Shown: positions 20,540 to 50,606, numbered from the stretch's first letter. The stretch is 64,000 bases of DNA from Bugula neritina (GCA_964035545.1 OZ037772.1:3749538-3813537), one strand, 5' to 3'. Translations and numbers: made by a program. Notes: generated by a model not told the origin, from the sequence alone.

Positions 20540-20660
20540 CTGGTTATTGTATGTCACGTGACTCAACAAATACACGCCCCTTCCGTTGTAACATCATAAC
20601 GTCATTGAACACAGTCATTCACACGTTGACTGAAGAGGACTACACATTGATAACTCGGAG
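20540..20660 (+). promoter_or_regulatory. Putative TRIM copy 1 promoter and non-coding first exon
   Basis: Local CpG enrichment, palindromic E-box gtcacgtgac (20553-20562), cacgcccc GC-box-like motif, Inr-like tcattc, and a donor GAG|gttagt at 20660. The next strong acceptor (22077) lies 23 nt before the ATG. Conserved in unit 2. Confidence 0.45.
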
Positions 20661-25100: not shown

Positions 25101-28100
25101 GGTAATTACTTGCTGTTTCTATTTCTGTAGGAAGAAACTGAGAAATATTACAAGAACCTGTTATTTATTATTTTATTATTAAAGTGAGTTATGTAACAGT
25201 AAAAGAGGAAGTAAGTTTGTCAGCATTAAGGTTTGTGTGAGACAGAAGTGGATAGTGCAGGAGTTTATATTCTCACTGTTATGTTGAATATTTAGTATAT
25301 TTCATCCTTCAAGTGTCTGTTCCCTTGATAAGATGGTATAGGCATAGCTTTAACTCAGTGGTGTCCCACCTTCTTCATACCATCCTCCTTTTTATGAATG
25401 TTTTCTATTAAGTTTCCCCCCTTTTAAAAAATTGTAATTTCATTTATAAAGAAAATCTGGGACGGCTTGTTTTCCTAATGGTTCATTGAGTGTAGAAAAA
25501 AGCACTTTGTATTTAACATGAACCAGTGTCTGTCACAACTTCAGTTCAGCTTTGAAAGCATTGATGCTGGTATTAAAAGCAGTGAGTTGATGATTATGCT
25601 TCTTCATTTTAGGTTCAGATTTTTTAGTACAGCAAATATATCTACTAGGTATGAAGTAAATAGTTTATAGAGATCAGTTCGACTGACTGCAAAAACTTGC
25701 TGTTAGTTTTTTCCTTTCAAGAAACTTGTTAACTTCCATTCGCAGCTAGGATAGAGTGAATATTAGAGACATGAATGTAGAAGTAAACTTAGATTGTAAA
25801 ATGTAGTGTGGATAAATAAATGAACTACATAAAATGAAGGAGTTGTAGTTATACATACACAGTACATGTAATCTTGAAACCAAGGCAACAGCTCAAAGAG
25901 CTGGTAACAAACTGTGTGAAACGAAACCCCCTAAAAAGCCCACATTTCCTGCAAGGGAATTCCTCAAAGGTTGGAGCTACTGCTTTAATGTTTTTCAATT
26001 ATGTCATTCCAAGTGCAAGCAGGGAATAATGAGCTAAACATGTGACATCTTTCTAGAATGTTCCTTTGTGTGAATCACTGCTAGAGAAGGTTGAGCTATG
26101 ATTAACTCAGATAGCAATACTTGAGGCAGGGTCTAACTGTTTAGTTATTACATAGTATGTGTATAGTGATACATCATCAACCTGTAGGTACAGGTAGTAG
26201 GTGTAGGATAAGTACAATGTCATATCTAAAAATGCTTTTATAAATAGTGTGATTTTATGTATACAGAGGAGACAGTAGCATCCCATGACTTGGCATCTTT
26301 GAGTGATTTGTCTTGTGAGTTACGAGAAAGTCTGACTAGTGGGATAGAGACTCTGTCTGAGAAAGTTGCAGAGTTGAATGACATCTCAAAGGATGCCTGG
26401 AAAGAACTGAGTAAAATAGAAGATGAAGTGAAGAAGATGGTTGCCAGAGTAAACGCTAAAGCTAATGCTCAGGTATGCTGACATGATGATGTCATTGGAT
26501 GTATTTCTGTTTGGCTGAAATTATGTTATGCATCTGGTCTTTGAGTTTTAATCAGAAATGAATTTCATTTGCCACTAGAATCAACTGACCATTAAAGTAT
26601 TATCATTCTGTGAACAAGTAGCAGTAGTCATTCATCACATGTTACTCAGTGCAGAGGAACCTGTCAATACAGATGACTCACTCATCCTTCTGCAACTGTC
26701 AATCACTCACAGAGAGAGGTTGGCTGTGTGAGTGATTGACAGGTGTCAGGAGGAGGAGACTAGTCACGTGGTGTACTAGCTCTCTGCTGTGTATAGAGTG
26801 TCACGTGACTGAGTCATTGTCCACTCAGTGGGTGATCTGTTATTTTCATTTCAAGTGCAGAGGTTGTGAGGTGCAGATGTGGTTACACTGTGTTACTATT
26901 TATTAGATAGCAGAGATTAGAAAGAGAGCTACAAACCTGAGGCTAGAAATATATGGATATTTGAAGAGCTGCACACAGATAGTGGATAATTATAGAATAG
27001 AGCTGGCCTTGAGTAAGATAATGGGCAGACAGTCTCTGCTGGACACAGTACAACATGCAGTTGATAAGTTCAATGATGCAGGGATTGTGAGAGACTACAA
27101 AGAGATGAGTGAGAAGGTGGAAAAGGCTACAGATATTGGTGTAATAGAGAAGTGTGTACTTCCAGACAGCATCTTGGTACCAACATGTAGGTGGAGTCTA
27201 TAAATAGTAACACTAACTATAAATAACTTTCTGCTTGTAATCATGTGAGTTGCTTTCACTGAATATTTAAATAGTAGAATAAGTAGATAGAGTTTATTTA
27301 TTAGAGATTGAGTTTTGTTCTACTCTCACATTATGAGACATTTCTGCAGTGTTTCAGAGTTTATGATGTATAAGTGAGCTGCTAAACTGTGTTATGCTGA
27401 CTACCTGCTGTCAGTATTAACAAGATATTCTCACTTAGACCTGTGCATCACGTAGCAACTTGTAGTAACTGCAGACTGCTTGTATTTAAACATCTTTTCA
27501 TTTTAAGTATGAAAAGCTGTTCCCACCTCCTCAGGTGATGAGATTCTCAAGTTATAGAATTGTTATTTTGTTGTTGCAGACAGTGAAGACAGTCTGGGAC
27601 TGAAGCTGCTGCAGCCACCATCTTATCTGCAGTCTGATGGACTTCCTGTACGTGACTCGTGTTACACAGTAAACATCTCAGCTGATGGACATCTCATGTG
27701 TCAGACACCAGAAGGTGTAGAAGTAAGAAATAGAGACACTCTGGATACTATCAGCTCAGCGGAGGACACCAATACTACAGAGTGGGGGGAGATACTCCAA
27801 CCTGAAGGGGTGATGGTAGGCAGCTGGTATAACAAGAAGCAGAAAACAGCTGAAGTCTCACTTCTTGATCCGAACTCCTTTGAGAAGACTCGCTCCCTCT
27901 ACAAGCAGCCATTAGATGTACTCCTTTACTATAGAATAGCTCAGCACGACTCACTGCTCTATATTGTAGACTGGAGAGAGAATCAGCTGGTAGTCTGTAA
28001 TCTAGTTGACAATAAAATACAGAAGTTCCCACTTCCTGAGATGAAGATCCCTGACCCTGTATGCATCCTCCCAGACTCAACTCTCCTCATAGGAGACTGG

Positions 28101-29408
28101 ACTGTAGATGGTAAAGTGAGAAGATATAAAGTGGAGAACACAACTCTCTCTCTAATGTGGGAGTTTCCTCACATCTCACGGCCATCTGGTATTTCCTTTG
28201 ATCCAACATCTGAACTGATTCACATCTGTACAAGGGAAGGACCTCTCCTCATCCTCTCACTTGAAGGTAAATACTCTGTTTATTATAGTAAGTTTAGTTA
28301 TTTTATATGTAATTATGTTGTAGTAAATAATATATTTTAATAATTAACAGTAAACAACTTCCACTCATAAGATATATTATGACATTGTTAGTATTTATCA
28401 AGTCACTGATGTTATTTTTAGCTAAAAGTTATGTAATAAAGACTGTAACATGCTGATAGTAGATGTTATATTCTTCATCACATGACTTGTAGCTAATAAT
28501 AATATTAGTGAATAATACTGCCTCCCTACAATAAGTTTATTTCCAGCTGCAGTAACATGCAGGATGTAAGCACAGGTAGAAGTGTATATTATACTGTATA
28601 GGTTTAAGGTGTACTCTGTGTAGTGTGCAGTGAGCTCTTAGTAAACTCTCTTATTCAGTCTTCCTTTCCAAGGGTTCACCTGGTAGTGTAGAGGATAGGG
28701 ACTCCATACTGCTGATTGAGTTGGTGCTGCAAGGGGTTCAAACCCACCTATCAGCATGTCTAGTTAGTATACTATGCAAGTGTTTTACAGTAATTTTAGA
28801 GGTGCTCAGTCTAACAACTGTGCAGACTGCCAGCTACACATGAGTTATGAGTTGTAGTTTGACTTCAGTCTAGTGCTGCTATTGTTTCGGTCATCAGATA
28901 ATTTAAATATAAATAATTTGATACTTATTGACTGCCATTGCTGAGACTATTGTAATTTGATGGTGGCTGGTAGAGCAGTGTTTGCTGGTGGGACTCAGGT
29001 GGCTGTGGTTGGTTCTTGTCAAGTATTTTATATGTGATAGTGTTGGAGTAGCTGCAGTGGTATTAGAAGTAGACATGTGGGTATGTTCTTGCTCAGAGCC
29101 ACAGGCTAAGTTTGTGGGTCAAGGTCAATACAGTTGTATAAGGAGACACTATTTTCTGCTGTTTGAATATTTACTTCATGCATGTAACCTGCTTAGTTCC
29201 ATCTTTAAAGACAGTCTGTCTGTTTCTCTCAATACACACCAACTTATACAATATGATGCTATTATTTACAGGTCAACTGGTGCTTACTGTTCCCAGAGAA
29301 AGTCTTGGTGTGAGTAGCCCCCACGTGTGGGACATTGCTGTGTATAACAGAGACACAGTGTTTCTAGCAGGTGGAGATGGACTGAGGAGATACACAATAA
29401 AATACTAA
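22101..29408 (+). CDS. TRIM/RBCC E3 ubiquitin ligase with C-terminal NHL-like beta-propeller, copy 1 (intact, 620 aa)
   Basis: join(22101-22282,24534-24714,24912-25101,26267-26472,26907-27186,27580-28266,29272-29408) = 1863 nt, all GT-AG and phase-compatible, no stops. RING CGYC-x14-CLHVYCMRC-x13-CAYC; B-box1 CDVC..C..LCQQH..H..H; B-box2 CEHH..CSKC..CMRC; helical coiled coil; NHL-like motifs PDPVCILPDSTLLIGD and RPSGISFDPTSELIHIC. Confidence 0.92.
22589..23104. mobile_element. hAT (Charlie/Buster-like) MITE in TRIM intron, copy 1
   Basis: Termini cagtcattcccaacc / ggtggggaaccactg; partial 8-bp TSD tgttaaag/tgttggat. Same subtermini as 25356-25982. Confidence 0.6.
25356..25982 (-). mobile_element. 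Internally deleted hAT (Charlie/Buster-like) element with transposase remnant, copy 1
   Basis: TIRs cagtggtgtcccacct / aggttggagctactg; 8-bp flanks ctttaact/ctttaatg. Minus strand reads YLVDIFAVLKNLNLK (frameshift) INAFKAELKL, resembling the Buster-family YLxDIFxxLNxLNxxLQ...FKxKLxLW segment. Confidence 0.7.
28676..28750 (+). mobile_element. tRNA-derived SINE-like head (Pol III A and B boxes), copy 1
   Basis: A-box-like TAGTGTAGAGG (28684) and B box GGTTCAAACCC (28735); no convincing cloverleaf. Confidence 0.45.
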
Positions 29409-29585
29409 ACTTATCAGCTACAGTTTGCTAATAATTAGCTCAGTGAGGTGCTGAGAGATAAACTGGATAAAATTTGTCATCAACATAATTATATTCATTA
29501 CAATTCATCATTACACACACTCTGTATTTTTAGTTGGATATGAGATGTTTTACTGTATCAAATATATGTTGCTATTTTACTATCT

Positions 29586-29591
29586 AATAAA
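29586..29591 (+). terminator. Polyadenylation signal of TRIM copy 1
   Basis: AATAAA ~180 nt after the stop codon, followed by T/GT-rich sequence; conserved at 50076-50081. Confidence 0.55.
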
Positions 29592-30377
29592 GTTTATTTG
29601 TTAGTGAAAACATAGTCTGTTTTCATGTCTCATTAGCTTAGTTCAAGTTGAGTTCGATTAGTAAAAATAATCTTTACTGGAGCAGTAACTGTAAATGACT
29701 TGTCTGTGGGAGAATTTATTTACTGAATTGACATGCAGGTGCAAGTAACTCCAACATGACTTAGCAAATTTATTCAAACCACACATGATACATAATATAG
29801 ATTCCATTGCTGTGTACAACAGCAACGAGTAGCCAATCAAATTGTTTCTTGTCATGCAATCAGGAATCTGATAAATAATATATAAGTCAATCAACTAGAT
29901 ATAAACACTGTTTTACTGTACACATGAGCTGTCTGTGATGCAGCTGCTTTGTAAAATGTGTGTAATTTGATGAGTTTAGTTCAATTGGTTGCAGTTTAAT
30001 TATGACGTGTTCTCCATTCACCTGGTAGAAACATCAGGAGGTATAATAGAAGACAACTCCTAAGCATGTCCAAAGGCATGCTTTTAGTAAACAATATATT
30101 GCAATGCTACCATCTGATTAGACAACTTAGTTCTCATGCAACAGCTTAGAGCTCCTGTGTATATTGCAACTAGTTACCAAATGGTAATGACAACATTTAC
30201 ATGTAAACTCAACTCTCTTAAAAATAGCCATTATAGTACTATAGTAGGGAGTTTTGCTGATGTGTTTGTATTATTTCTACCTGCAGGGCTGATTACATTA
30301 TAAATTGTTTAATCTTATCTTGGAGTTGTGCCTCCAAATTAATCAAGTAACTTGTATTTTCTATTGTCTGTTGTCAG

Positions 30378-30545
30378 GTGGATCCAGATGGTGGCTCCAT
30401 AGCTAATGCTATCCAGGCTTACTGTGGCAAGGAAATGAAGAGCACTTGTATCAATGCCAAGACCGCGGAGTTTGCCATCAAGTCGTACGTCACCCAGCAG
30501 CTAGATAATCAGCCATTCGTTGCTAAACACATGGGAACAGCACTC
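30378..30545 (+). pseudogene. Orphan third copy of a collagen C-propeptide exon
   Basis: Open 168-nt exon VDPDGGSIANAIQAYCGKEMKSTCINAKTAEFAIKSYVTQQLDNQPFVAKHMGTAL with intact AG/GT, lying upstream of Gly-X-Y exons (out of gene order). Confidence 0.85.
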
Positions 30546-30639
30546 GTGAGTGTTTATCTTGTATCAACCATGACTGTCTTAGTAATAGTAAAGAATATCC
30601 AAGAGTTTTATGTTGAGCATTGTTTCCTTCACATCTATA

Positions 30640-30780
30640 CTATATGCTGGGGTTTTCCACACACCTATGCTATATGCTGTGGTTTCCTTCCCACATATGC
30701 TATATGCTGGGGTTTCCTTCCCACATATGCTATATGCTGGGGTTTCCTTTCCACATATGCTATATGCTGGGGTTTCCCTC
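30640..30780. repeat. 30-bp tandem repeat (tatgctatatgctggggtttccttcccaca), ~4.5 copies, at the duplication junction
   Basis: Visible tandem units; the last unit runs into atgctggggtttccctcacagctagtctg, homologous to 11054-11080. Confidence 0.85.
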
Positions 30781-30807
30781 ACAGCTAGTCTGTCACTTAT
30801 TTTCAGG

Positions 30808-33800
30808 AGCTGTTTATCTGGAGTACTGGGTGCTGATGGTAGACCTGGAGAAGAGGGTGCTTATCATAGACCTGGGGAGCATGGCGATCAAGGACTTCTT
30901 CGCCTCATGGGTATACAGTGGGAATCCCCGGTAACCAGGGACCTGAAGGTGCTCAAGGAGACAAGGGTGATAAGGCAAGGACATTTTTTATTCAGTTTTC
31001 TCTTTATTTTAGTTCTCTGATTTTTCACTAGCCAATCCTTTAGTTGTTTATTTATAGGGGCCAGCTGGGCCACAGGGTTCTTCTGGACCAACTGGATTTT
31101 CTGGACCAGCGAGTCCACGTGGGCCAACTGGTCCTCAAGGACCCCAGGGAGCTGAAGTAATTCCCGGTGAACAAGGACCTAAATGTATGAATTAAGTTGA
31201 ACCAATCTTTGTGCTTAGTTATTGACCATCAACAGAATCTTTGCTCTAAGAGTTATCCTTCTTAGTAGGAAGGTAAGGCAACTCCTAACTCATGATAATA
31301 TGAATATCATCTGCTGTTGAAAGACCCACTGGTTTCCAGGGACTTCAGGGATTCCCCGGAGCTCCTGTTATTGATGGTGAAAGGGGAGATGTCGGACCAG
31401 TTGGTATTGCTGGACCACCCAGGCTACGGGGTTCGGATGGCAAACAAGGAATTACTGGTCCTCCTGGTGCTATGGGTGGTATGGGACCACCTGGACCTGA
31501 TGGTGCTAAGGTAAACACTTACACTGCTAACAGGTTATTGTTACTCATCTTGTTAGTTTAGTGGTAATAAACCAATAGTCTGTATTTCTAGGGTGAACAA
31601 GGGAGAGATGGGGAAATGGGTAGTCCTGGCAGACCTGGACCTCCTGGACTTCCTGGTGAAGCCCCAGTATTTGGTTAGTTATTAGCAAAACCAAGTTATT
31701 GTTCATTACTTGTATCTTTTTCATTCTCTTCCAACTGTGTATTGGTAATATTTTGGGAATTTCATCCATAGCTTGTGATTGAAGCTTTTATTTTATTCTA
31801 CCATGGGTTATGTTAGGTGCTCCCCCTATGATGATGAGTGCAATGATGTCCAACAGTAAAGGTGTACAAGCAGATGATGCAGGCGCCAACAATGAGCTCT
31901 ATAATATGTACCTCAGTGAGTAATGGCCATGATGTGCTTTGATGTTGCCCGATTTGTAGTGGAAAGGGCTTTTTGAATGCTGTTTTGGAACTCAAATGAC
32001 AGACTCGTTTCAAATTGTTTATGTTTTTGCAAACAAACATTTTTATAATTAACTGCTAGAAACTATTGTAATAAAAATAGAGACAGCTGTTATAATGTGT
32101 TTCTCCTCCTAGCATTGATGATTGACATTCTTGTTTGATGAGTCACCTATTTAGTTCGTTTCTCCAGTTAAATGTTGCTACATTCTGACATATTATATAA
32201 TGTTGATTTTATTGCTGTTAGCTTACATCACTACTTCCACCTTATTTCTCTAGAAACAAAAGTAAGAGACGGGTCCAAAGACAGCCCTGTTAGAGACTGT
32301 AGAGAACTCTTCACTGAAAACCCAGAGTTCAAGAGTGGAACTTAATGGGTGAGAGAAGATGCTGATATGTTTCTATTTTCTCTGCTCAGAGGAAATCTGC
32401 ATCCAAGTCTAATGACTGAAATTTTGTGAACATGTTTTACATTCTACAATTACTACTCCTGAGATGTCAATATAATGTCATGTGAAGTTTCCACAGATAT
32501 TTAATGAATTGTTGTTTAGGAAAAAAAGTTTTCCCATGAGTTGCCTGTATTATATAATTCTGTATATTCAACAGCTGAACATGTTTTAGTAGTTTTATTT
32601 GATATTAGCATTATGTTAGTGTGAAATAGAGAAGTTGTATTCTCTATTGTTTGTTGTCAGGTGGATCCAGATGGTGGCTCCATAGCTAATGCTATCCAGG
32701 CTTACTGTCGCAAGGAAATGAAGAGCACTTGCATCAATGCCAAGACCTCTGAGTTTGCCACCAAGTCGTGCGTCACCCAGCAGCTAGATAATCAGCCATT
32801 CGTTGCTAAACACATGGAAACAGCACTCGTGAGTGTTTAACTTGTATCAGCCATGACTTTCTCTGTATTATTTTAAAATATCTAAAAGTTTTTTTGTTGA
32901 GCATTTTCGCTATTGTAACATATTTGTTTATTGTATAAGGATGTTGATAAGTGTTGCTATAGTAACATGTGGGTTTCCTGTATGGATGTTGATAAGTGTT
33001 GCTATAGTAACTTGTAGTTTGTAGTTTGAGTATCAGGCAGAGTTTTCCCAATTCTCAGCTTCCTTCGAATTCACTCTGAGAGAGCAAACCCTGACTTACA
33101 GGTAATAGTCACTGCTAGCAGCTTATCAAATAGTCACTAGTCGCTAGTCACCAGATATTAGTCCTCTACTATGTTGCTAGTCACTTGATAATCTGAACAA
33201 TCACAGGCTTCTTCTTAAGCTGAGCGAGTTGTTGGTATGACTATTCCCTTTGCCGATTGTAGATGTATAAACTCAGTGGCGGTAGAAGACGCATTCGGTA
33301 GGAATAATAAGTCAGTCATTTTATATACAGCTGGTGATAAAGAATACACAGCAACATTTAGCAGGTTCCAATTTTCCGTGCTGCAGAGTGATTGCAAGGT
33401 ATGTAAATCCGACCTATATAGCGTAAATCAGACCTACATACTGTAAATCTGACCTATATACTGTGAATCTGACCTATATACTGTAAATCTGACGTATATA
33501 ATGTAAATCTGACCTATATAGTGTAAATCTAATCTATATAGTGTAAATTCTACCTACATATGAACATGATTGCGATAGTTGCATCTTTTTTTCTATTAAG
33601 ATACAATATAGCTTGCCTTTGAGGCTTTTTAACAACTACTTATGAGTTCAACCCAAAAGCCACTTTGATTTCTGTGCAAGTTTAGAATTTTGAGTTTGCC
33701 CTCTGCCATTTTGTAGTATTCCAAATACCATCAGAAGCTCTGACAGTGATTGAGATTGACACCAAGACCTCCACCCACTTGCCTATTATTGACATTGCTC

Positions 33801-33865
33801 TTGGTGACATCGGGACCACCCACAAAGAGTTTGGGGTTCAGCTTGGAGAAGTCTGCTTTTCATAG
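30808..33865 (+). pseudogene. Fibrillar collagen pseudogene, 3' part, copy 2
   Basis: Same exons as copy 1 from ~11556 onward; private TAA at 32343 (TAT in copy 1). Retains the natural end LPIIDIALGDIGTTHKEFGVQLGEVCFS* (TAG 33863-33865). Confidence 0.9.
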
Positions 33866-34596
33866 ACTCATATCTAACAACAGTGTTATTTGTCTGATTT
33901 GTAAGACTGTCCCTGATTAGATAATTAGTGGCCAATCAGAGAATGCAATCAATGTTTGGTTGGCTGAGACCAGCAGTCTGATTTTTATATAACCTAATTT
34001 TTAAATGAAAGATTTGATTACTCTATAATTAAATTTATCCGAGACTTCCAAGGCAGTGACGGTGATTTTTGTACATATAAATTTGAAGAAGTTTAGCTAT
34101 AGGGTTTATGCTGTTTTTTAATTATTCCACCATAACCTGAGATTGTGAGTAGTGATTCTAGAATGAGATAGGGAGGGTCTTATGCCCCTCCCTGTGATTT
34201 TATATATTTTGAAACTGTTGTTGATTTAGTAATTCTGTTGGTGCTACATTTTTAAATTTATTTAATCCAATCATTTCTTTAATATTACAAAATATATTTT
34301 ACCATACAGCACTACACAACTTATTTCTCAGCTTGTAAATTTCATCATCAAAATTATTACAGTACTAAAGTTGGTCACAGATTTCTGATAAGCTGCAGTT
34401 TTCAGATTTGATTATTTAACCTATTCATCCTGAAATGAGACATTGTTAGTTTAAAATGGAGTGTAACATATATTTTAGTTACTTAGTTCCAACTGTGTTG
34501 ACCATATCAACATTTTAAATTTTACTTTGGCTGCTATGAAGTATAATATAAGCAAATGGCATTAAGTTATTAATATATAATAAGGTTTGCAAAGAC

Positions 34597-34739
34597 TTAA
34601 TATACCAAGCAACTGTGACAAGACATGACAATAACTCCAGCCAATCATACATAGGACTTTGTTCAACTACCTTCAAAACCAGACTCAACAACCATAAAGC
34701 CTCTTTCCTACATGCAGATAAAACCAACAGCACACAACT

Positions 34740-34746
<7 letters not shown>
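34597..34746 (+). mobile_element. Penelope-like retroelement fragment (GIY-YIG endonuclease)
   Basis: LIYQATVTRHDNNSSQSYIGLCSTTFKTRLNNHKASFLHADKTNSTQL: IY...YIG...FKxRxxNH pattern typical of Penelope-like GIY-YIG domains; ends in (TA)n. Confidence 0.7.

Positions 34747-34806
<60 letters not shown>
34745..34806. repeat. (TA)n microsatellite
   Basis: TA run; shorter paralog at ~15127-15163. Confidence 0.95.
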
Positions 34807-34808
<2 letters not shown>

Positions 34809-35107
34809 AGATTGAGATATATATAAATATAATATATATGCGGCCCAGAGAGGAACTCAGTCATCATGAACTCCAATGTCAATAATTTGAATATATTACA
34901 ATAATACATATATAGTATATTATTATTATTCTTTCAGGATAACCATTCTATTTATATTAACACCTGTTTATTTGAAGTAATTTAATAAGTTTTGCTGTAA
35001 ATTTATTTCTCAAACCAGCATGTCAGTTAAATATAAAAGTTAAATTACACACACAACAGATAAACATGCAGTGATATACATTATAAAGCATATCATGTTG
35101 GTGAATT

Positions 35108-36492
35108 GCTATACAGTATATTATGTTATACATTATATTATGTTATACAGTATATTATGTTATACAGTATATTATGTTATACAGTATATTATGTTATACG
35201 TTATATTATGTTATACATTATATTATGTTATACGGTATATTATGTTATACATTATATTATATTATACAGTATATTATGTTATACAGTATATTATGTTATA
35301 CAGTATATTATGTTATACATTATATTATGTTATACAGTATACTATGTTATACAGTATACTATGTTATACAGTATATTATGTTATACAGTATACTATATTA
35401 TACAGTATATTATGTTATACATTATATTATGTTATACAGTATACTATGTTATACAGTATACTATGTTATACAGTATATTATGTTATACGGTATATTATGT
35501 TATACATTATATTATGTTATACGGTATATTATGTTATACATTATATTATGTTATACGGTATATTATGTTATACATTATATTATGTTATACGGTATATTAT
35601 GTCATACATTATATTATGTTATACGGTATATTATGTTATACATTATATTATATTATACAGTATATTATGTTATACAGTATACTATGTTATACAGTATATT
35701 ATGTTATACAGTATATTATGTTATACAGTATATTATGTTATACAGTATATTATGTTATACATTATATTATGTTATACAGTATACTATGTTATACAGTATA
35801 CTATGTTATACAGTATATTATGTTATACAGTATACTATATTATACAGTATATTATGTTATACATTATATTATGTCATACAGTATATTATGTTATACAGTA
35901 TAATGAGTTTTACAGTATATTATGTTATACAGTATATTATGTTATACAGTATACTATGTTATACAGTATATTATGTCATACAGTATATTATGTTTTACAG
36001 TATATTATGGTATACAGTATCTTATGTTATACAGTATATTATGTTATACAGTATACTATGTTATACAGTATACTATGTCATACAGTATATTATGTCATAC
36101 AGTGTACTATGTTATACAGTATACTATGTTATACAGTATACTATGTTATACAGTATACTATGTTATACAGTATATTATGTTATACAGTATACTATGTCAT
36201 ACAGTATATTATGTCATACAGTATATTACGTTATACAGTATATTATGTTATACAGTATATTATGTAATACAGTATACTATGTTATACAGTATATTATGTT
36301 ATACAGTATATTATGTTATACAGTATATTATGTTATACAGTATACTATGTTATACAGTATACTATGTTATACGGTATATTATGTTATACAGTATAATATG
36401 TTATACGGTATATTATGTTATACAGTATAATATGCTATACAGTATACTATGTCATACAGTATACTATGTTATACAGTGTATAATGTTATACA
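35108..36492. repeat. 17-bp minisatellite, ~81 units, copy 2
   Basis: Same unit and flanks as 15450-16255, but longer. Confidence 0.97.
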
Positions 36493-38288: not shown

Positions 38289-38797
38289 CTTTAAATAGTT
38301 GGTATGTTAGTATGCCAGTGACCTAAAATTTAATGATCACTCTAGTGTTATTTTACACTTAACACAATTCAAATATTGTACATAATAATATATACTATAC
38401 TCCATTAGTATAGTATAGTAGTTGTCACCACCTGCAGGATGGTCACATGACCACTGCTACTTCTCAGACAGTTCACTAAATGACAGAATGAGAAGAATGA
38501 TGGCTGATCAGATGTATAATAACATAGTTTATCAGTTCACTTGCAGTCTTAAATTATTTTTGTTGAAAGTTAGTTGCTTGCATTTTAAAACTTGTTAATA
38601 AAACTATTATAACTATACAATACTAGGTTTATATGTGACTGCAATGGAATATTTACAATGAAATTTACAGTCCAGTTCTTCGTGATGGAAATTTTTTATC
38701 TGCAGAAGAGCTCTAACTGAAAAACTGTTATCTAAAGTTTGTTACTTAGAGTACTATACAAATATTATTAGCAGCTTGACATTTGTTATCATTAAGG

Positions 38798-39814: not shown

Positions 39815-40719
39815 AACTACATTACATCACATGCTGTAGGAACACTGGCACTTGTTATCTAAAGTTTGTTACTTCAAGTACTATACAAATATTATTATTA
39901 GCTTGACATTTCTTATCCCTAAGGGGTGTTTAATATAAATATAATACTTGAGATAAACATTCTCATGTGATATAATGTAGCCTGAAGTTATATCACATGA
40001 CTTGACTATTTCTACTAGAGTTAGGGTGGGTCACCTGACAGCCCACACATACAACTACACTATACACCACATGCTGTAGGAACACTGGCACAGCTGAGGC
40101 TAGGCTGACTAATAAGTATGGAATAGTTGACCCAGCAGTTAAATACTTTGTTATAGAGACTCTAACTTTCTAGTATTAGAATATAAATATTACTCTAAAG
40201 ATTTGGTATATCAGAGAGCCAGTCACTTAACACCAATTATAAACTTGGTTGTCTCAATCAGAGCTGGTCTCTGTGTATTTCAGTGTGTTTTAAAGGTTCT
40301 CTGAAGCTTCCCCGGTCATTATACGAGCTGCCTTTAAATATATACAATAGTTTTAATACAATACAAAGACAATTATTGTTAACACATGTCAAGTAACAGA
40401 ACAGGAATAAGGCCTCTCTGATAGTTATTTGAATATCTACAAGAAGTATAACTAAATATACAATAATAACTACATATCTAGAAACATGCAGAATATTATA
40501 CTAGAAGAAATCTCTTGTAACAAAGTATTGTTACATAACTGGAAGATAGAGAAACTATATTTCTCAATTCAGAACACAATCTGCAATCAGCATTCAGTGC
40601 TGAAATTAAGCAAAAGCGATGACAGTTGTTATATGAATATAATAATATCATGATGTAAATAATGATAATGATATTATATTCATATACCAAATGTCATTGC
40701 AGTTCCCTAAGCCAAGCGT

Positions 40720-40842
40720 AACTGGGTATTGTAGGTCACGTGACTCTACAGATACACGCCCCTTCCGTTGTAACATTATAACGTCATTGAACACAGTCAT
40801 TCACACGTTGACTGAAGAGGGCTACACACTAATAACTCGGAG
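40720..40842 (+). promoter_or_regulatory. Putative TRIM copy 2 promoter and non-coding first exon
   Basis: Paralog of 20540-20660 with gtcacgtgac, cacgcccc and the GAG|gttagt donor retained. Confidence 0.45.
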
Positions 40843-42830
40843 GTTAGTATAACATTTATAGACCTAGTTTATCAATAGTCGGCAATCAGTATAAGTATTA
40901 CATTTACTACATTGCTATAACTATTAGAACTAGATTCAGTGTTGCAATCAGTTTTAATACCACGCTCGCTACCATCATCATTAAATTTATTTAAAATGAT
41001 TATCTTAACAAGTTATACTTATAGTAGGTTTATTAATATTATTATTTATAACCAGTGAGTCACTTATCTTTACTTTGTGAATTTATGATTGTAACACTGA
41101 ATAGCATTATCATCATTATAATTATAATAATAATTATAATTATGATTGCAAGTTTTTAAATTAATGTTACACTCACTCGATTTGAATATCAGAATATCTT
41201 ACCACTGGCACTAGTCAGTTATTATTGACAGTGCATAGTGATCACTGCAAGTGAGTGCATGTGAGACATTGTCATACCCTGCACATTCCAATGCACTGCC
41301 CTTCTGTATTCATTGTGAATAGCATATTTAGTTGGCTTATATTATTTTACTCAGCTTTGATTAAACAACTAACATGTAGTGCACTGCTCTAATTTATGTA
41401 ACAACACTAGTTGCTGCTATCTTTACCTCTAAATTTATATCATTTAAAAAACTAACATATTTACATGATAGATGATAGGTATTAAAATTAAAGTTACATA
41501 ATTGGAATTGACTATTCTATAGATTACTGAGAATATAAGGTTAGCCGCATTTATATGATGTTGTAGACATAAAATATGAGGTTAGTGTTAACAAATCATT
41601 TGCTAGGTAAGAGTGTAGAATAAATAATTTGCTAGAGATGAGTGTAGAAGCTGCCAACTCATGAAACAACTACACCTGACCTAACAGAAGCATATAAACG
41701 TGTTAAATTAGTTTGTTTCACACCACCATAGTTTCTATTAGATGATTAGAATAGCAAACTAGCAATTGATGGCATGTTTCCTGACAGATGGAAGGGTGAC
41801 TCTAAGTAACAAATTAAATCATGCATCACGAACACTGCAGAAATGTTAAAATGAGTTTTGTCATGTAGATTATTGAGAAAACAAATAATTTCCAACACCC
41901 AGCACAAAATATTTCATAGAACTATGTTTTCTCACACTGCTATGTTCCCCCTGTTTAGTGTCTTACGCATGCTATACACTCCTTGCTATGGAATAGTGCA
42001 AAGTACACCCTGGGAAGGAACAAAGTCTATCCTATGCTCAGGTGTAGACTCTGTCCCAGTAGTGTGTCAAAATACTCAGTTAGAAACACATTATTATTGG
42101 GAGTTCATGAAATATCCAGCTTATATAAGCAGCTGAGTCAAGTTCTGCTGTTTGTTCATAAAATTATTACGTAACTCACTGGTATTCATGTTTCACTTCT
42201 ACTCTACATTTTGATGGTCTGGTTATGACTTAGAACTTAATAGGCCAGTCTTTGGTTGGGAAACCTTCACAGATGTAGTGTAAAATATTATGCTAAGAGT
42301 ATGTGTATCTTTCACAGCACTTCCTTATCATATAACCAAGATGGCAGAATCCAGAGTTGTGAAAAAGAGACTAAACAATTCGTATCGCTGTGGGTACTGC
42401 TCGCAGTACTTCAACAAACTTGAAGATCCCAGAACTCTGCCCTGTCTGCATGTGTACTGCATGAGATGTTTGAAGACTGACATCGGTGGTAGGAAGGATC
42501 ATATCAGATGTGCTTATTGTAGGTGAGTTACAGTACATAACACAATATATCATGTCATAGGCTTGCATATGATTTTCTCACTATCATCTAGGAGTTGTCT
42601 GATCTGTGTCTATGAAAAGCAAACAATACTGTATGTTCTATGTGAACTCTGGTTACTAACTTGTGGAGTGTGTGGATATCTTTTCATTAGGTTAAAAAGA
42701 TATCTGTTATGTAGATTACATCATCAGCTGTCCTCTCTTGTTGAATTGTGGTGCTGTTGGATGTCATGGGATTGGGGTTGTCTCCTCATTATATTATTTT
42801 GTTCTCATACAGTACAAGTACTTGTTAGAG

Positions 42831-43343
42831 CAGTGGTTCTCAACCTTTTTCATACCATTCCCACTTTCATACATGTTTACTGTTGATTCCCCTCCCTTTT
42901 GACAATCGGAAATTTTTATGAGTGACAAAATGATAATATAGATTACAATACAATATTTTTCCATTACATTTAAATACAATATAGTTATTTCTGATAATTA
43001 TATTATGCATGTGTAAAACACAGAGCAGTTCAATTAATGATATTATGGCTGCAGCTGATGACATTGTAGGCTACCAGCTTGCTTTCAAACCTCCCACCCC
43101 AACCCTTAAACCCCAACCCCGAAATTGAAATTAAAAACACATTCATGTAGAAGTAGACTGAGATGGCAGAACTGGTTAAATGGATAAGCTAAGATGAAGG
43201 CTTATAGATATACAGGTACATGTAACTTGCAAGGGCTCAAAAGTCTTCAACAAACTGCTTGAAATTTTTAAAATCAAAATCTCAGCTCTCCCTAAAAAGC
43301 CCAAATTCCCTCTTAGAAGAATCCCCCAGGTTGGGAACCGCTG
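42831..43343. mobile_element. hAT MITE in TRIM intron, copy 2
   Basis: TIRs cagtggttctcaacct / aggttgggaaccgctg. Confidence 0.65.
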
Positions 43344-44300
43344 TGTTGAATTGACTTGTGTTTACTATCTTCTTTCCTGTGTTTACTATTTTCTTTCCTG
43401 TGTTTATAAACATGTATGATTTTGTCATGACAACACAGTTGTAGCACAAAGTATAGTTTACTAGTAAGTAGTGATTGTGTAGTGAGAGTGGAGTGTCTGG
43501 TTATTGTCCATGGTTATGTGTAATCTGTAAGGAGTAGAATTATATTATTTTAATATAATGTTGAGAGAGGTACTTTTATAATGGCAGTTTGCTCAATAGC
43601 TTTAGTTCTAAGGCGATAGACTCATAGCTCTGGAGTCTAGCAGCTGCTACTATTACCACTAGCTGTTCAAAATTCGGGCTGCCAAAGCATAATAGCCATT
43701 GACAAGGCCAAGCAGTCACTGGGAAATTATTTGACTAAAGAGCAGGTCTTATGACAATTAGTAGTCAGTCCCTTAGACAGGAATCAGTGATTCTGTGACC
43801 TATTTAGTTAAATCCAATGCTGAAATTTTGATTGACTATTAGATAGCCATCACAATTTTATTTGGTAGTGAGTTGTACAATATATTATTATGGGGTGTCA
43901 ATCAGTGTCTAATATAGTCTGTGAATTGAGTGTTTACTTTAGCTTAGATGAGTTGATTACTTCTTCTACCATCAGTCAGTTGTATTAAGTGTTACTTTGT
44001 ATTGAGTGAATAGTGTTAAGGATTTGGGCCTATATTATGCCACCCCCCCCCCTCTGACTCAGACTGTGACCCAACCTGCTGCACATACATAGCAGTACTA
44101 CACTGAAGATAGTTAACATGTGCATATATCATCCTACTAGTAATGGATTACTAAGTACAAGTTATCCTATGACTCACTCTTCTTATGCTAGCTGCACGAG
44201 ATAGACAACACTCACACGTGACACGAACTCACAGTGCACTAGCTCTTGACACATTGCCAAGGATGATGAAATGACAGTTTCGCGCCACTCCTAGCAGTTA

Positions 44301-44644
44301 GCCTAGGGCCACACGGTGCGTATTTTCGCATGCGAAAATTGAAATCACAAGTAGCAAAGGTGTCCACTGTAGCGTCAGTGATGCATGATAAATAAAGTTT
44401 TCATTTTTAAATCGCACTCGCTTTCAATAAAACGCAATTTACTGGAATGTAGCACTAAAATAAAGAAGTTGGGCTCGCTGAATAACTATCAGCCAATTAG
44501 GTGACGACGACGGAGACGATTCGCACTTGCGTTGAGAATGCAGAGCGACAAGTGCAAAGGTTTTCTCAACACGCACAGTGGACACCTTTGCTACTTGTGA
44601 TTTCAATTTTCGCATGCGAAAATACGCACAGTGTGGCCCTAGGC
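44301..44644. mobile_element. PIF/Harbinger-like MITE, 344 bp, recent insertion
   Basis: 70-bp TIRs with one mismatch (gcctagggccacac...gtgtggccctaggc); TTA duplicated at 44298-44300 and 44645-44647; empty site cctagcagTTAgagtggc at ~24100-24117 in unit 1. Confidence 0.9.
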
Positions 44645-45895
44645 TTAGAGTGGCAGGGAATAGTTGTAGTATGTTGTAGTATTGGCTCTTCAGAATTCAC
44701 CCCTCAGTAACTAGTTGCATTGCACAAACTTGCAACAATAGTGAATAATTATTGACAATATGGCCTCCACTCAGTAGTTAACTAGTAATTTATCTATCAT
44801 TTTACTCTACAAGTTACAGTTGAGTCTATTTGTTAAGTAGCAGTTCTTTGTCATGAGTGACTATTTTCCAGCATATTAAGTACATAATATAGTCAAGTGT
44901 GTTTGTGTGATAGCCTGTGGTCTATATAATGAATGTGTGTTGATGAGTGATGAGTATTTATTTGAGTATTTGTCAGGGACATAGCTGTGTGTGTGGATGG
45001 AATATTTCATTACTTGAGATATACTAAACACAGCTAACACAGGTAACATACTGATTGCTATATATTGTAGGAAAGATCACTATGACATCACAGATCCCAC
45101 AACACTACCAGTAGCTCAGCATGGAGACCCCTTAGAATACAAGTCTCCACCCAAACCTGCACCCATTCCTTGCGATGTGTGTAAAGGTGGAACACAAGCT
45201 GCTGTGTTTTGTCTTGAGAGTCAAAAAAAATTGTGTCAGCAGCATCAAGAAGTGAGTCTTTCTTATGTCATTTCTCAAGATTAGTTACTAAACCAGTTCT
45301 TGTTTGTATGTAGAATATTATTGAAAAGAAATGTTGAGTCTGTGTGACTTTTTATACTAAACACACAGTTTCACAGTGCAGTGAGTCAACTATGACAGAC
45401 TTGTTGGTGAAAATACAACCAACTAAACTGTTGACCTTTATTATACAGAATCACAGAGAGCTGATGGGAGATAGACATCAGTTTATTGACATTGAGGTCT
45501 ACAGAGCTTCTCCCCAAAGATATACTATAACTGAATGTGAACATCATAAACAGGAACAGCTGACAGAAGTGTGTTCCAAGTGTCACCAGATATTCTGTAT
45601 GAGATGTGACATGAGGACTGGCTGTAATGATAAGCCAGGTATTTACTTGCTGTTTCTATTTCTGTAGAAAGAAACTGAGAAATATTACAAGAACCTGTTA
45701 TTTAATATTTTATTATTAAAGTGAGTTATGTAACAGTAAAAGAGGAAGTCAGTTTGTCAGCATTAAGGTTTGTGTGAGACAGAAGTGGATAGTGCAGGAG
45801 TTTATATTCTCACTGTTATGCTGAATATATTTTAGTATATCTCATCCTTCAAGTGTCTGTTCCCTTGATAAGATGGTATAGGCATAGCTTTAACT

Positions 45896-46544
45896 CAGTG
45901 GTGTCTCACCTTTTTCATACCATCCTCCTTTTTATGATTATTTTCTATTAAGTTTCCGCCTTTTTGATAAAATTGTAATTTCATTTATAAAGAAAATCTT
46001 GGACAGGTTGTTTTCCTAATAATTCATTGAGTGTAGAAAAAAGCACTTTGTATTTGACATGGACCAGTGTCTGCCACAGCTTCAGTTCAGCTTTGAAAGC
46101 ATTGATGCTGGTATTAAAAGCAGTGAGTTGATAATTATACTCATTCATTTTAGGTTCAAAGTTTTTAGTACAGCAAATATAACTACTAGGTATGCAGTAA
46201 ATAGTTTGTGGCGATCAGTTCTACTGACTGCAAAAACTTCCTGTTGGTTTTTACTTTCAATAAACCTTTTAGCCTCCATTCGTAGTAGGAGGGGTAGCAG
46301 CTAGAGTAGAGTGAATATTAGACACATGGATGTAGAAGTAAACTTAGATTGTAGAGTGTAATGTGGATAAATAAATGAACTACATAAAATGAAGGAGTTA
46401 TAATTATACATATTCATGTAACCTGGAACACAAGGCAAGAGCTCAAAAAGCTGGTAACAAACTCTGTGAAATTTTAGAAATGAAAACCCCTAAAAAACTC
46501 AAATTTCCTGTGAAGGGGAATTTCCCCAAGGTTGAGAGCAACTG
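45896..46544 (-). mobile_element. Internally deleted hAT element with transposase remnant, copy 2
   Basis: TIRs cagtggtgtctcacct / aggttgagagcaactg; 8-bp TSD ctttaact/ctttaatt; minus strand AYLVVIFAVLKTLNLK...INAFKAELKLW. Confidence 0.7.
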
Positions 46545-49175
46545 CTTTAATTTTTTCAACTATTTCATTCCAAGTGCAGTGATTAATGAGCTAACCTGTG
46601 AAATATTTCTAGTCCAACCAACTGTCTAGTTATCACATAGTATGTGTATAGTGATACACCATCAACCTGTAGGTACAGGTAGTAGGTGTAAAATAAGTAC
46701 AATGTCATTTCTATAATAACGTTTTTATAAATAGTGTGATTTTATGTATACAGAGGAGACAGTAGCATTCCATGACTTGGCATCTTTGAGTGATTTGTCT
46801 TGTGAGTTACGAGAAAGTCTGACTGGTGGAATAGAGACTCTGTCTGAGAAAGTTGCAGAGTTGAATGACATCTCAAAGGATGCCTGGAAAGAACTGAGTA
46901 AAATAGAAGATGAAGTGAAGAAGATGGTTGCCAGAGTAAACGCTGTAGCTGACGCTCAGGTATGCTGACATGGTGATGTCATGTAATGTATTTCTGTTTG
47001 TCTGAAATTGGAATTTGCATCTGGTCTTTGAGTTGTAATCAGAAATGAATTTTATTTGCCACTAGAATTAACTGGCCATTAAAGTATTATCATTCTGTGT
47101 AAAAGTAGCAGTAGTCATTCATCACATGTTACTCAGTGCAGAGGAACCTGTCAATACAGATGACTCACTCATCCTTCTGCAACTGTCAATCACTCACACA
47201 GAGAGGTTGGCTGTCTGAGTGATTGACAGGTGTCAGGAGGAGGAGGAGGAGGAGACTAGTCACGTGATGTACTAGCTCTCTGCTGTGTATAGAGTGTCAC
47301 GTGACTGAGTCATTGTCCACTCAGTGGGTGATCTGTCTCTTTCATTTCAAGTGCAGAGGTTGTGAGGTGCAGATGTGGTTACACTGTGTTACTATTTATT
47401 AGATAGAAGAGATTAGAAAGAGAGCTACAAACCTGAGGCTAGAAATATATGGATATTTGAAGAGCTGCACACAGATAGTGGATAATTATAGAATAGAGCT
47501 GGCCTTGAGTAAGACAATGGGCAGACAGTCTCTGCTGGACACAGTACAACATGCAGTTGATAAGTTCAATGATGCAGGGATTGTGAGAGACTACAAAGAG
47601 ATGAGTGAGAAGATGGAAAAGGCTACAGATATTGGTGTAATAGAGAAGTGTGTACTTCCAGACAGCATCTTGGTACCAACATGTAGGTGGAGTCTATAAA
47701 TAGTAACACTAACTATAAATAACTTTCTGCTTGTAATCATGTGAGTTGCTTTCACTGGATATTTAAATAGTAGAATAAGTAGATAGAGTTTGTTTATCAG
47801 AGAATTGAGTTTTGTTCTACTCTCACATTATGAGACATTCCTGCAGTGTTTCAGAGTTAATGATGTATAAGTGAGCTGCTAAACTGTGTTATGCTGACTA
47901 CCTGCTGTCAGTATTAACAAGATATTCTCACTTAGACCTGTGCATCACGTAGCAACTTGTAGTAACTACAGACTGATTGTATTTAAAATATCTTTTAATT
48001 TCAAGTTTGAAAAGCTGTTCCCACCTCCTCAGGTGATGAGATTCTCAAATTATAGAATTGTTATTTTGTTGTTGCAGACAGTGAAGACAGTCTGGGACTG
48101 AAGCTGCTGCAGCCACCATCTTCTCTACAGTCTGATGGACTTCCTGTACGTGACTCGTGTGGCACAGTAAACATCTCAGCTGATGGACATGTGATGTGTC
48201 GGACACGAGAAGGTGTAAAAGTAATAAATAGAGACACTCTGGATACTATCAGCTCAGTGAAACACACCAACACTACACTGCGGGGATAGATAATCCAACC
48301 TGAAGGGGTGATGGTTGGCAGCTGGTGTAACGAAGAGGAGGAAACATTTGAAGTCTCACTTCTTGATCCGAACTCCTTGGAGAAGACTCGCTCTCTCTAC
48401 AAGCATTCAATAGATGTACCCTTCCTTTACTATAGAATAGCTCAGCACGACTCACTGCTCTATATTGTAGACAGGAGGGAGAAACAGCTGGTAGTCTGTA
48501 ATCTAGTTGACAATAAAATACAGAAGTTCCCACTTCCTGAGATGAAGTACCCTCTACCTGTATGCATCCTCCCAGACTCAACTCTCCTCATAGGAGACTT
48601 CACTGTAGATGGTAAAGTGAGAAGATATAAAGTAGAGAACACAACTCTCTCTCTAATGTGGGAGTTCCCTCGCATCTCACATCCATCTGGTATTTCCTTT
48701 GATCCAACATCTGAACTGATTCACATCTGTACACTGAGTGGACCTCTCCTCATCCTCTCACTTGAAGGTAAATACTCTGCTTATTATAGTAAGTTTACTT
48801 ATTTTATATATAATTATGTTGCAGTAAATAATATATTTTAATTATTAACAGTAAACAACTTCCACTCTTAAGATATATTATGATATTGTTAGTATTTATC
48901 AAGTCACTGATGTTATTTTCAGCTAAAAGTTATGTAATAAAGACTGTAACATGCTGATAGTAGATGTTATATTCTTCATCACATGACTTGTAGCTAATAA
49001 TAATATTAGTGAATAATACTGCCTCCCTACAATAAGTTTATTTCCAGCTGCAGTAACATGCAGGATGTAAGCACAGGTAAAAGTGTATATTATATTGTAT
49101 AGGTTTAAGGTGTACTCTGTGTAGTGTGCAGTGAGCTCTTAGTAAACTCTCTATTCAGTCTTCCTTTCCAAGAGT

Positions 49176-49250
49176 TCACCTGGTAGTGTAGAGGATAGGG
49201 ACTCCACACTGCTGAGTGAGTTGGTGCTGCAAGGGGTTCAAACCCACCTA
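49176..49250 (+). mobile_element. tRNA-derived SINE-like head, copy 2
   Basis: Paralog of 28676-28750. Confidence 0.45.
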
Positions 49251-50606
49251 TCAGCGTGTCTAGTTAGTATACTATGCAAGTGTTTTACAGTAGTTTTAGA
49301 GGTGCTCAGTCTAACAACTGTACAGACTGCCAGCTACACATGAGTTATGAGTTGTAGTTTGACTTCAGTCTAGTGCTGCTATTGTTTTAGTCATCAGATA
49401 ATATAAATATGAATAATTTGATACTTTTTGACTGCCATTACTGAGACTATTGTAATTTGATGATGGCTGGTAGAGCAGTGTTTGCTGGTGGGACTCAGGT
49501 GGCTGTGGTTGGTTCTTGTCAAGTATTTAATATGTGATAATGTTGGAGTAGCTGCAGTGGTATTAGAAGTAGACATGTGGGTGTGTTCTTGCTCAGAGCC
49601 ACAGGCTAAGTTTGTGGGTCAAGGTCAATATTGTATAATGAGACACTATTTTCTATTTGAGTATTTACTTCATGCATGTAACCTGCTTAGCTCCATCTTT
49701 AAAGACAGTCTGTCTGTTTCTCTCAATACACACCAAGTGATACAATATGATGCTATTATTTACAGGTCAACTGGTGCTTACTGTTCCCAGAGAAAGTCTT
49801 GGTGTGAGTGACTGGGTGAATGACATTGCTGTGTATAACAGAGACACAGTGTTTCTAGCATGTTTAGATGGTCTGAGGAGATACACAATAAAATACTAAA
49901 CTTATCAGCTACAGTTTACTAATAATCAGCTCAGTGAGGTGCTGAGAGATGAATTGGATAATATTTGTCATCAACATAATTATTTCATCACAATTCATCA
50001 ATACACACACTCTGTATTTATAGTTGGATATGAGATGTTTTACTGTATCAAATATATGTTGCTATTTTACCATCTAATAAAGTTTATTTGTTAGTGAAAA
50101 CATAGTCTGTTTTCATGTCTCATTAGCTTTAGTTCAAGTTGAGTTTGGTTAGTAAAAATAATCTTTACTGGAGCAGTAACTGTAAATGACTTGTCTGCGG
50201 GAGAATTTATTCACTGAATTGACATGCAGGTGCAAGTAACTCCAACATGACTAAGTAAATTTATTACAACCATTCAAAATAATATACATTCCACTGCTGT
50301 GTACAACAGCATTGAGTAGCCAATCAAATTGTTTCTTGTCACGCAATCAGGAATCTGATAAATAATATATAAGGCAATCAGCTAGATATAAACACTGTAT
50401 TACTCTTCACATGAGCTGTCTGTGATGCAGCTGCTTTGTAAACTGTGTGTAATTTGATGAGTTTAGTTCAATTGGTTGCAGTTTAATTATGACATGTTCC
50501 CCATTCACCTGGTAGAAATACCTTGTGTGCACAGACAAGTTGTAATGACTAACAGAAACTTTTTCAGTAGGTTCCAGTTCATCTTGAATATAGTACAGCT
50601 TGTTGT

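Follow-up and report, generated by a model that had tools for sequence, protein, structure and literature searches.

A large family of TRIM genes in the bryozoan Bugula neritina carries a hypervariable NHL-like propeller face: a candidate repertoire for intracellular recognition

In this work we examine a stretch of 64,000 nucleotides of the Bugula neritina genome (GCA_964035545.1 OZ037772.1:3749538-3813537; the whole stretch is referred to as the window), which holds two neighbouring copies of one 7-exon, 624-codon TRIM gene on the + strand, copy 1 at 22101-29408 and copy 2 at 42341-49899. The gene encodes, in this order, a RING finger, two putative B-boxes, a putative coiled coil and a six-bladed NHL-like propeller. 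An earlier note, made from the sequence alone, had described the pair as TRIM paralogs differing chiefly in the loops of a propeller, and had proposed that they belong to an expanded invertebrate family serving as a variable sensor of pathogens or non-self. The exons are listed below, those of copy 2 as projected from its pairwise alignment with copy 1.

22101..22282, + strand: copy 1 exon 1, start codon and RING finger (Pfam RING matches, GT donor)
24534..24714, + strand: copy 1 exon 2, linker and first half of B-box 1 (AG/GT borders kept in paralogs; weak zf-B_box match, E 0.037)
24840..25101, + strand: copy 1 exon 3, remainder of B-box 1 and B-box 2 (zf-B_box below cut-off; borders kept in paralogs)
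26267..26472, + strand: copy 1 exon 4, coiled coil part 1 (weak matches of coiled-coil type; frame and splice sites kept in paralogs)
26967..27186, + strand: copy 1 exon 5, coiled coil part 2 (read from sequence)
27580..28266, + strand: copy 1 exon 6, linker and propeller blades 1-5 with ten hypervariable loops (AlphaFold2, site models)
29272..29408, + strand: copy 1 exon 7, blade 6 with two hypervariable loops, and stop codon (repeat motif, site models)
42341..42522, + strand: copy 2 exon 1, RING (pairwise projection; AG/GT borders kept)
45071..45251, + strand: copy 2 exon 2 (pairwise projection)
45377..45638, + strand: copy 2 exon 3, B-boxes (pairwise projection)
46754..46959, + strand: copy 2 exon 4, coiled coil (pairwise projection)
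47463..47682, + strand: copy 2 exon 5, coiled coil (pairwise projection)
48078..48767, + strand: copy 2 exon 6, blades 1-5 (pairwise projection; carries a premature TAG)
49766..49899, + strand: copy 2 exon 7, blade 6 and stop codon (pairwise projection)

Copy 1 is intact, its frame being open over all 624 codons and every border reading GT/AG when the sequence is inspected at the candidate sites; the borders of exon 6 fall in both copies where the earlier note had placed them. Exon 5 of copy 1 has an alternative start at 26979 and an alternative donor/acceptor pair (27190/27584) that alters one residue, and intron 1 of this copy contains a simple repeat (23855-23943). When projected onto 20 paralogs, the 7-exon model is open with canonical splice sites in 17, which strongly supports the gene model. 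Copy 2 has a single defect, a premature TAG at 48287-48289 in exon 6 (codon 421, E421 to TAG). It also carries four framework changes that are unique among the sampled copies (W419R, Y434C, A441F and F451L), two of which, W419R and Y434C, fall on otherwise invariant residues, and it is probably a recently disabled member of the family.

The RING finger on exon 1 is recognised by Pfam above cut-off (zf-RING_UBOX 31.6 bits, cut-off 25.2; zf-C3HC4 24.4 bits, cut-off 21). A strict regular-expression scan for RING gave no match, the last Cys pair lying at the exon end, and a looser scan matched. The B-boxes score 22.0 bits (exon 3) and 14.6 bits (exon 2) against a zf-B_box cut-off of 24.1, the exons having been scanned singly and B-box 1 being split by an intron; their Cys/His spacing is visible in the translation. 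Exon 4 weakly matches Pfam families of helical coiled-coil type (E 0.006-0.03). The earlier description of a TRIM protein with an NHL-like propeller thus stands outright for the RING, with B-boxes that remain below cut-off and an NHL relationship that is reached only through remote evidence. Inspection of the translation, made without a predictor, brought out neither an evident signal peptide nor a membrane segment, in favour of an intracellular protein. In a brief look by eye, no exact consensus for IRF/NF-kB-type promoter sites was seen, and promoters of this type form no part of our reading.

The fold of the C-terminal domain was approached by modelling exon 6 alone with AlphaFold2, using an alignment of paralogs and distant matches. 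The model has 19 strands, which make up five four-stranded blades (predicted local distance difference test, pLDDT, 87.4; predicted template-modelling score, pTM, 0.84), and exon 7 repeats the blade motif of exon 6 and provides a sixth blade. Starting from the propeller, phmmer reaches NHL-bearing proteins (E 7.5e-8), the family profile matches the PknD and Pizza propellers (E 1.5e-4), and Foldseek finds the NHL domains of Mei-P26 and NHL-2 (template-modelling score, TM, 0.61-0.64). In the ESM Atlas, language-model features point to NHL clusters, mostly from molluscs (0.94), and the best structural match is a mollusc cluster with B-box and NHL domains (TM 0.78, root-mean-square deviation 2.7 A over 208 residues). 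With the sixth blade from exon 7, the domain is a six-bladed propeller with a fold related to that of NHL domains.

The gene pair belongs to a large family, as the earlier note had supposed. A genome search with exon 6 yielded 118 matches, at least 76 of them full length at >=77% amino-acid identity, and exon 6 is open in 73 of these 76 close copies, the other 3 carrying stop codons. Most of the close copies (57 of 76) lie between 4 kb and 4.40 Mb of the contig that holds the window (C8), the others being on contigs C2, C3 and C1, and some two dozen more diverged copies occur elsewhere in the genome, which puts the family at about 100 copies in Bugula neritina. Among 1.84 billion representative proteins only 28 relatives were found, mostly exon-sized fragments (as are the close ones, of which one stems from a read set of 2016), and the 28 include no spliced protein of full length. 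As far as these searches reach, the family is lineage-restricted and almost invisible outside the Bugula neritina genome. A search of a limited body of literature found no description of a bryozoan TRIM family, of a hypervariable NHL propeller or NHL-type TRIM array, or of a bivalve TRIM-NHL expansion.

Two observations on the distribution of the family stand apart from these counts. Outside the window, C8 carries fragments at 263239, 456614, 739519, 2726007, 3732591 and 3858901 that match residues 31-93 of exon 6 only (61-68% identity), each within a small open frame; these could be relics, or a separate small gene with one or two blades. In addition, runs X18-X21, which bear the same organism label and whose kind is unstated and taken as DNA, hold 0.30-0.43 of the sampled 31-letter words of 22000-29500, a low share that may mean that individuals differ strongly at this locus, or simply that the contigs are thin.

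Direct comparison of copies 1 and 2 essentially confirms the coordinates and counts of the earlier note. Over the 350 codons of the RING/B-box/coiled-coil (RBCC) exons, Nei-Gojobori counting gives 14 non-synonymous and 8 synonymous differences (ratio of non-synonymous to synonymous rates, dN/dS or omega, 0.44), so that the 14 or so replacements read off by hand in the earlier note were right and its count of about 6 silent codons was slightly low. Exon 6 gives 42.3 non-synonymous (Nd) and 12.7 synonymous (Sd) differences (omega 1.03), and exon 7 gives 10.8 and 1.2, respectively. Amino-acid-changing codons number 35 in exon 6, one stop and one codon indel included, and 6 in exon 7, close to the roughly 34 and 6 counted by hand. 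All of the multi-base codon changes reported there were recovered (TAC/GGC, GCT/TTT, ATC/TAC, GAC/CTA, TGG/TTC, CGG/CAT and AGG-GAA/CTG-AGT), as were all of the peptide contrasts (KIPDP/KYPLP, HISRP/RISHP, VDW/VDR, GDW/GDF, CTRE/CTLS, KKQK/EEEE, SPHVWD/DWVND and LAGG/LACL). Exon 6 differs at 56 of 687 bases, compared with 12 of 378 and 32 of 983 in its flanking introns (Fisher p=3.4e-6). The states of the two copies at their variable sites nearly all recur in other members (22/22 and 21/22). The copies are not simple young duplicates that diverged in place, most of their differences being states common to other members that have been reassorted.

Across the family, whole-gene analyses covered 18 alignable genes and propeller analyses 29-31 of the roughly 100 copies; loci L031, L033, L034 and L042, which did not align over the 5' exons, were excluded from the former, and L013 and L022 from analyses of exon 7. 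Variation is highly uneven. Of the 277 propeller columns, 161 are the same in all 29 copies and 21 contain 5-10 different residues, exon 5 has the lowest diversity in the family (pi 0.01-0.04), and dN/dS of the RING exon is 0.03 in 18 paralogs. Family-wide, exon 6 has dN 0.074 and dS 0.056, and its flanking introns diverge by K 0.031 and 0.035; the replacement divergence of the whole exon, framework included, is therefore about twice the local neutral proxy.

Site models, for which we used our own codon likelihood of Goldman-Yang type (F3x4 frequencies, an IQ-TREE tree and one scaling factor), resolve this divergence into classes of sites. For the propeller in 29 copies, model M0 gives omega 1.66, and M2a is preferred over M1a with a likelihood-ratio test (LRT) statistic of 851, 55% of sites falling at omega 0.04, 33% at 1 and 12% at 13.2. 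Restricting the propeller to the 18 genes changes little (M0 omega 1.65, LRT 542, 10% of sites at 15.6), and the RBCC exons of the same 18 genes, taken as a control, give M0 omega 0.23, LRT 15 and 2.8% of sites at 4.5. Thirty propeller sites, 24 of them in exon 6, belong to the high-omega class with posterior probability >0.95. Since recombination inflates such tests, the six blades were also run singly, each of 33-51 codons and with a separate tree; every one reaches significance (LRT 58-137, omega 7-33), blade 6 among them (LRT 108). At the selected sites the proportion of non-synonymous differences (pN) is 0.42, compared with a synonymous proportion (pS) of 0.052 in the framework, changes of 2-3 bases make up 43% of differing codons as against 5% elsewhere, and the commonest residues are Trp and Arg. 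Purifying selection acts on the N-terminal ligase scaffold and on the framework of the propeller. Hypervariability between copies is found at about 30 residues, spread over twelve loops, where dN/dS is far above 1. Positive selection on the propeller, proposed in the earlier note together with a per-domain and site-model analysis (run here as M1a vs M2a), is upheld by these values.

A more prosaic account would attribute the excess of replacements to a loosening of constraint or to decay into pseudogenes, especially in copy 2, whose premature TAG and unique framework changes are what such decay would leave behind. Decay, however, cannot lift the omega of loop sites to 13 while the strands remain invariant, and the strong constraint on more than half of the propeller sites and columns argues in the same direction. 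Nor does it agree with the open exon 6 of nearly all close copies or with the 7-exon frame kept in 17 of 20 paralogs. Where framework differences between the two copies can be polarised, 9 are derived in copy 1 and 8 in copy 2, so that changes do not fall on the copy 2 branch alone. We regard decay as largely refuted and give it very little credence as an explanation.

The selected sites are also confined in space. Assignment was possible for 23, and 22 of these fall within or beside even-numbered, that is alternate, loops (Fisher p=1.8e-6), and because successive loops of an up-and-down meander alternate between faces, this places the selected sites on one face of the propeller rather than scattered through its core. 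By this topology, the variable residues would all be on the same propeller face, at two loops per blade, and the twelve loops correspond to the D-A and B-C loops in the usual naming of strands. In Brat and LIN-41, the D-A and B-C loops form the top face, which binds RNA. The variable recognition face that the earlier note had predicted, and had suggested mapping on a predicted structure, is in this way borne out by the topology of the AlphaFold2 model.

Variation at these loops does not follow a single tree of the genes. The nearest relative of each copy shifts segment by segment; in the last exon and 3' flank, for example, copy 1 differs by 1.4% from a gene at a distance of 213 kb and by 6.1% from its neighbour, copy 2. 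A permutation test of the pairwise homoplasy index (PHI) is significant (p<0.001), with 56% of informative site pairs incompatible, and conversion tracts were examined with permutation values specific to each pair, as three near-identical genes dominate a global threshold of GENECONV type.

These three genes (L041, L049 and L046, at 0.50, 0.78 and 2.92 Mb of C8) are up to 2.4 Mb apart and 99.8% identical over about 9 kb including flanks, propeller exons excepted. Such near-identity implies that the genes were duplicated and dispersed very recently, or that long conversion acted within the array.

Outside the propeller the three genes show 13-17 differences in about 7,400 bases (roughly 0.1-0.2%), and in exon 6 they show 26-36 differences in 687 bases (3.8-5.2%), clustered at the variable patches, with adjacent introns at 0.2-1.0%. 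Their propeller pS of 0.026-0.035 is more than ten times the background, shared framework polymorphisms, and with them a silent marker, switch in step with the patches, and for half of the differing patches both alleles are found in other sampled copies. Since point mutation and selection would not raise silent sites in this way, short tracts appear to have been imported from other copies, and their persistence in exons, and hardly in neighbouring introns, fits selection that retains loop-changing events. Together with the mosaic relationships above, the comparison indicates that variation is reassorted among copies by short conversion tracts in the propeller exons, in agreement with the patchwise gene conversion that the earlier note had envisaged.

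Pervasive recombination also gives room for a neutral account, in which conversion and hot-spot mutation merely shuffle a fixed pool of variants and the omega signal is an artefact of recombination. The PHI result, the incompatible site pairs and the mosaic nearest neighbours would all be expected from it, as would the silent differences imported alongside replacements and the raised pS at variable codons. Conversion nevertheless moves variants and creates no excess of replacements over silent changes, so that it would leave unexplained a whole-exon dN about twice the divergence of the flanking introns, the low omega of the RBCC exons in the same recombining genes, the significance of every blade on its own tree and the limitation of variable sites to one structural class of loop. 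A neutral process would, moreover, ignore exon borders, and in the near-identical genes tracts persist in the exons with adjacent introns at 0.2-1.0%. On this balance we hold neutral mosaicism to be improbable.

Chimeric or collapsed copies in the assembly might likewise generate false mosaic differences, and the array, with 3-5% intron divergence between copies, is highly repetitive and hard to assemble. Mis-assembly would not, however, yield differences that are codon-structured, that keep the frame in nearly all copies and that fall at the same loop positions in every blade. Relatives of the exon are also present in independent public read sets, and runs of eight studies hold parts of the stretch. 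An assembly artefact is, of the explanations considered here, the one in which we place the least belief.

Taken together, these results lead us to consider it probable that the window samples a lineage-restricted family of about 100 genes for cytosolic RING E3 ligases whose hypervariable propeller face constitutes an intracellular recognition repertoire reshuffled by conversion. A large family with positive selection confined to the propeller surface agrees with the part of our working definition of a diversified receptor repertoire that concerns family size and selection; the definition further calls for expression, for induction upon infection or contact with non-self, and for foreign ligands. 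The constant RING argues that ligase activity has been kept, and the variable face argues for many different ligands. The array would then be a germline-encoded repertoire of binding surfaces mounted on one constant ubiquitin-ligase effector, in which selection for new specificities would retain both conversion events and point changes that alter loops. Each copy would most likely bind a different intracellular ligand, such as a protein or RNA of viruses, other parasites or selfish elements, and this ligand, or a signalling partner, might then be tagged with ubiquitin, as with TRIM5 and the finTRIMs of fishes.

Several points weigh against this interpretation and temper it. The variable face was assigned by strand order and topology and not from coordinates. 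Pfam, its NHL profile included, has no match in exon 6 (E up to 1) or exon 7 (E up to 0.1) and the NHL link is remote, which is why we call the domain NHL-like and do not certify it as a member of the NHL family. The copies analysed are a partial sample of the family, and the site models rest on a fixed tree and our own code, the inflation of such tests by recombination being a concern that the blade-by-blade runs and the comparison with introns lessen and do not remove. At the selected codons pS is raised as well (0.156), which may reflect extra mutational input besides selection. Intron 3 equals the exon in divergence between copies 1 and 2 (K 0.096), so that the contrast between introns and exon is local to the introns flanking the propeller exon; for these alone did the greater similarity of adjacent introns reported in the earlier note hold. 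Finally, transcription is indicated solely by RNA-labelled runs, which hold 0.20-0.27 of the sampled words of the stretch, approximately its exonic share; RNA runs under the label "symbiont metagenome" contain part of the stretch.

Several known systems share some features with the family and differ in others. Canonical TRIM-NHL proteins (Brat, Mei-P26, LIN-41/TRIM71, NHL-2, TRIM2/3/32) are single-copy, conserved regulators of development. The Bugula proteins apparently have the same domain order, with a predicted propeller that matches the NHL domains of Mei-P26 and NHL-2, and differ in having neither a Pfam NHL match nor a filamin domain, in being amplified about 100-fold and in having a hypervariable face. 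The mollusc proteins with B-box and NHL domains that provide the best structural and language-model matches probably represent the wider lophotrochozoan group from which the family originated, although most of them are too dissimilar in sequence for phmmer to connect them with it. The F-box and MATH-BTB adapters of nematodes and plants are large, clustered, lineage-specific families for substrate recognition by E3 ligases, with positive selection confined to the substrate-binding domain and pathogen proteins as proposed targets; they have other folds and act in multi-subunit ligases, unlike the propeller with its twelve-loop pattern described here.

The closest parallels lie elsewhere. The teleost finTRIM/ftr, btr and hltr genes and primate TRIM5alpha combine large duplicated arrays, positively selected C-terminal loops and recombination among copies (PMC3137616), and, like the present family with its putative B-boxes and coiled coil, they join a constant RING/B-box/coiled-coil scaffold to hypervariable, positively selected C-terminal surface loops. 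They differ from it in that their C-terminal domain is a B30.2 (PRY-SPRY) beta-sandwich rather than a six-bladed NHL-like propeller, in that the present host is a bryozoan, and in that the present family is not known to have an antiviral role. NHL and other non-SPRY TRIMs are described as a conserved, slowly evolving group, and the fast-evolving group as comprising SPRY proteins only (PMC2533329). In the hnwd genes of Podospora anserina (HET-D/E/R), which encode WD40 NLRs, diversifying selection acts on a small number of interaction-surface positions in each repeat, and repeats are exchanged by concerted evolution within and between members (PMC1805685). The Bugula family would share with them an intracellular beta-propeller recognition domain with diversified surface positions; hnwd, however, comprises about 10 genes with WD40 repeats in variable number, a NACHT effector module and exchange between repeats. 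The Bugula family has about 100 genes, in which two exons encode a fixed six-blade NHL-like domain and the effector is a RING, and its exchange is from gene to gene. Of the systems compared, we take the B30.2 TRIMs of fishes and primates (PMC3137616) and the WD40 NLRs of fungi (PMC1805685) to be the best analogues of the family.

On the same analogies, the repertoire may serve to sense pathogens or non-self, and we favour its use inside the cell against viruses or other parasites. The same ligase repertoire might instead be aimed at endogenous or conspecific targets, as in allorecognition after contact or fusion of colonies, control of transposons, management of bacterial symbionts, or conflict over gametes or meiotic drive. 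The animal is colonial, the top propeller face is where canonical TRIM-NHL proteins bind RNA, and the nearest evolutionary analogue is an intracellular propeller family of fungal allorecognition (PMC1805685), all of which lend this alternative some weight. Sequence does not separate such targets from pathogen targets. Allorecognition loci are nevertheless usually few and highly allelic, rather than arrays of about a hundred paralogs, and a protein that shows neither an evident signal peptide nor a membrane segment would be restricted to acting within cells. We therefore judge endogenous or conspecific targets to be unlikely, yet the most serious of the alternatives to parasite recognition.

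A bolder possibility goes further than a germline repertoire against parasites. It holds that diversification is a dedicated process, with micro-conversion targeted to exons among the roughly 100 copies, possibly somatically, giving a colonial lophotrochozoan anticipatory, combinatorial intracellular receptors for pathogens or conspecific non-self. We consider this doubtful; if true, it would amount to a new class of animal variable-receptor system, in which a propeller is fused to a ubiquitin ligase.

Vertebrates are known to have diversified TRIM repertoires, in which the B30.2 domain is what varies, and NHL TRIMs are regarded as conserved developmental regulators. Here an NHL-like TRIM has been amplified about 100-fold in an invertebrate of a little-studied phylum, with twelve hypervariable loops on what is predicted to be one face. 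Should the copies recognise foreign proteins or RNAs, they would represent an independent invention of a germline-encoded intracellular receptor repertoire, and would supply a naturally occurring library of binding surfaces carried by propellers of one fixed scaffold. The finding lends itself to direct tests, as the sites are defined, near-identical pairs of genes that differ in their loops only exist, and the animal is common and easily collected.

The two gene copies lie within a larger duplication in the window.

11565..50518, strand not assigned: segmental repeat of two adjoining units, ~11565-30031 and 30843-50518 (self-BLAST, Tandem Repeats Finder)

In a self-BLAST of the window the two units are 88-97% identical by segment, mostly 92-97%, and each carries one TRIM gene, collagen-like exons and a 17-bp satellite. 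The satellite, TATACAGTATATTATGT, forms one array per unit, at 15452-16256 (47 copies) and 35110-36492 (81 copies) with about 91-92% match, and gives rise to long spurious open frames on the + strand. Coding pieces of collagen-like Gly-X-Y character, for example GLPGISGNPGGAGERRPPGFPGDTGVLGEPGD, are found 5' of the TRIM gene in each unit (10300-10590 and ~30843-31053), and possibly belong to a short-exon collagen or C1q-like gene that was duplicated together with the TRIM gene. A second tandem array, of the 23-bp unit ACAACAGGCTATGAATATACAGG, occupies 56180-58324 with 93 copies at 97% match, and is very regular with a strong AT skew (0.41). Beyond it, on the minus strand at 59813-60720, open frames with motifs resembling those of class I aminoacyl-tRNA synthetases look like a housekeeping gene within the region of the TRIM array.

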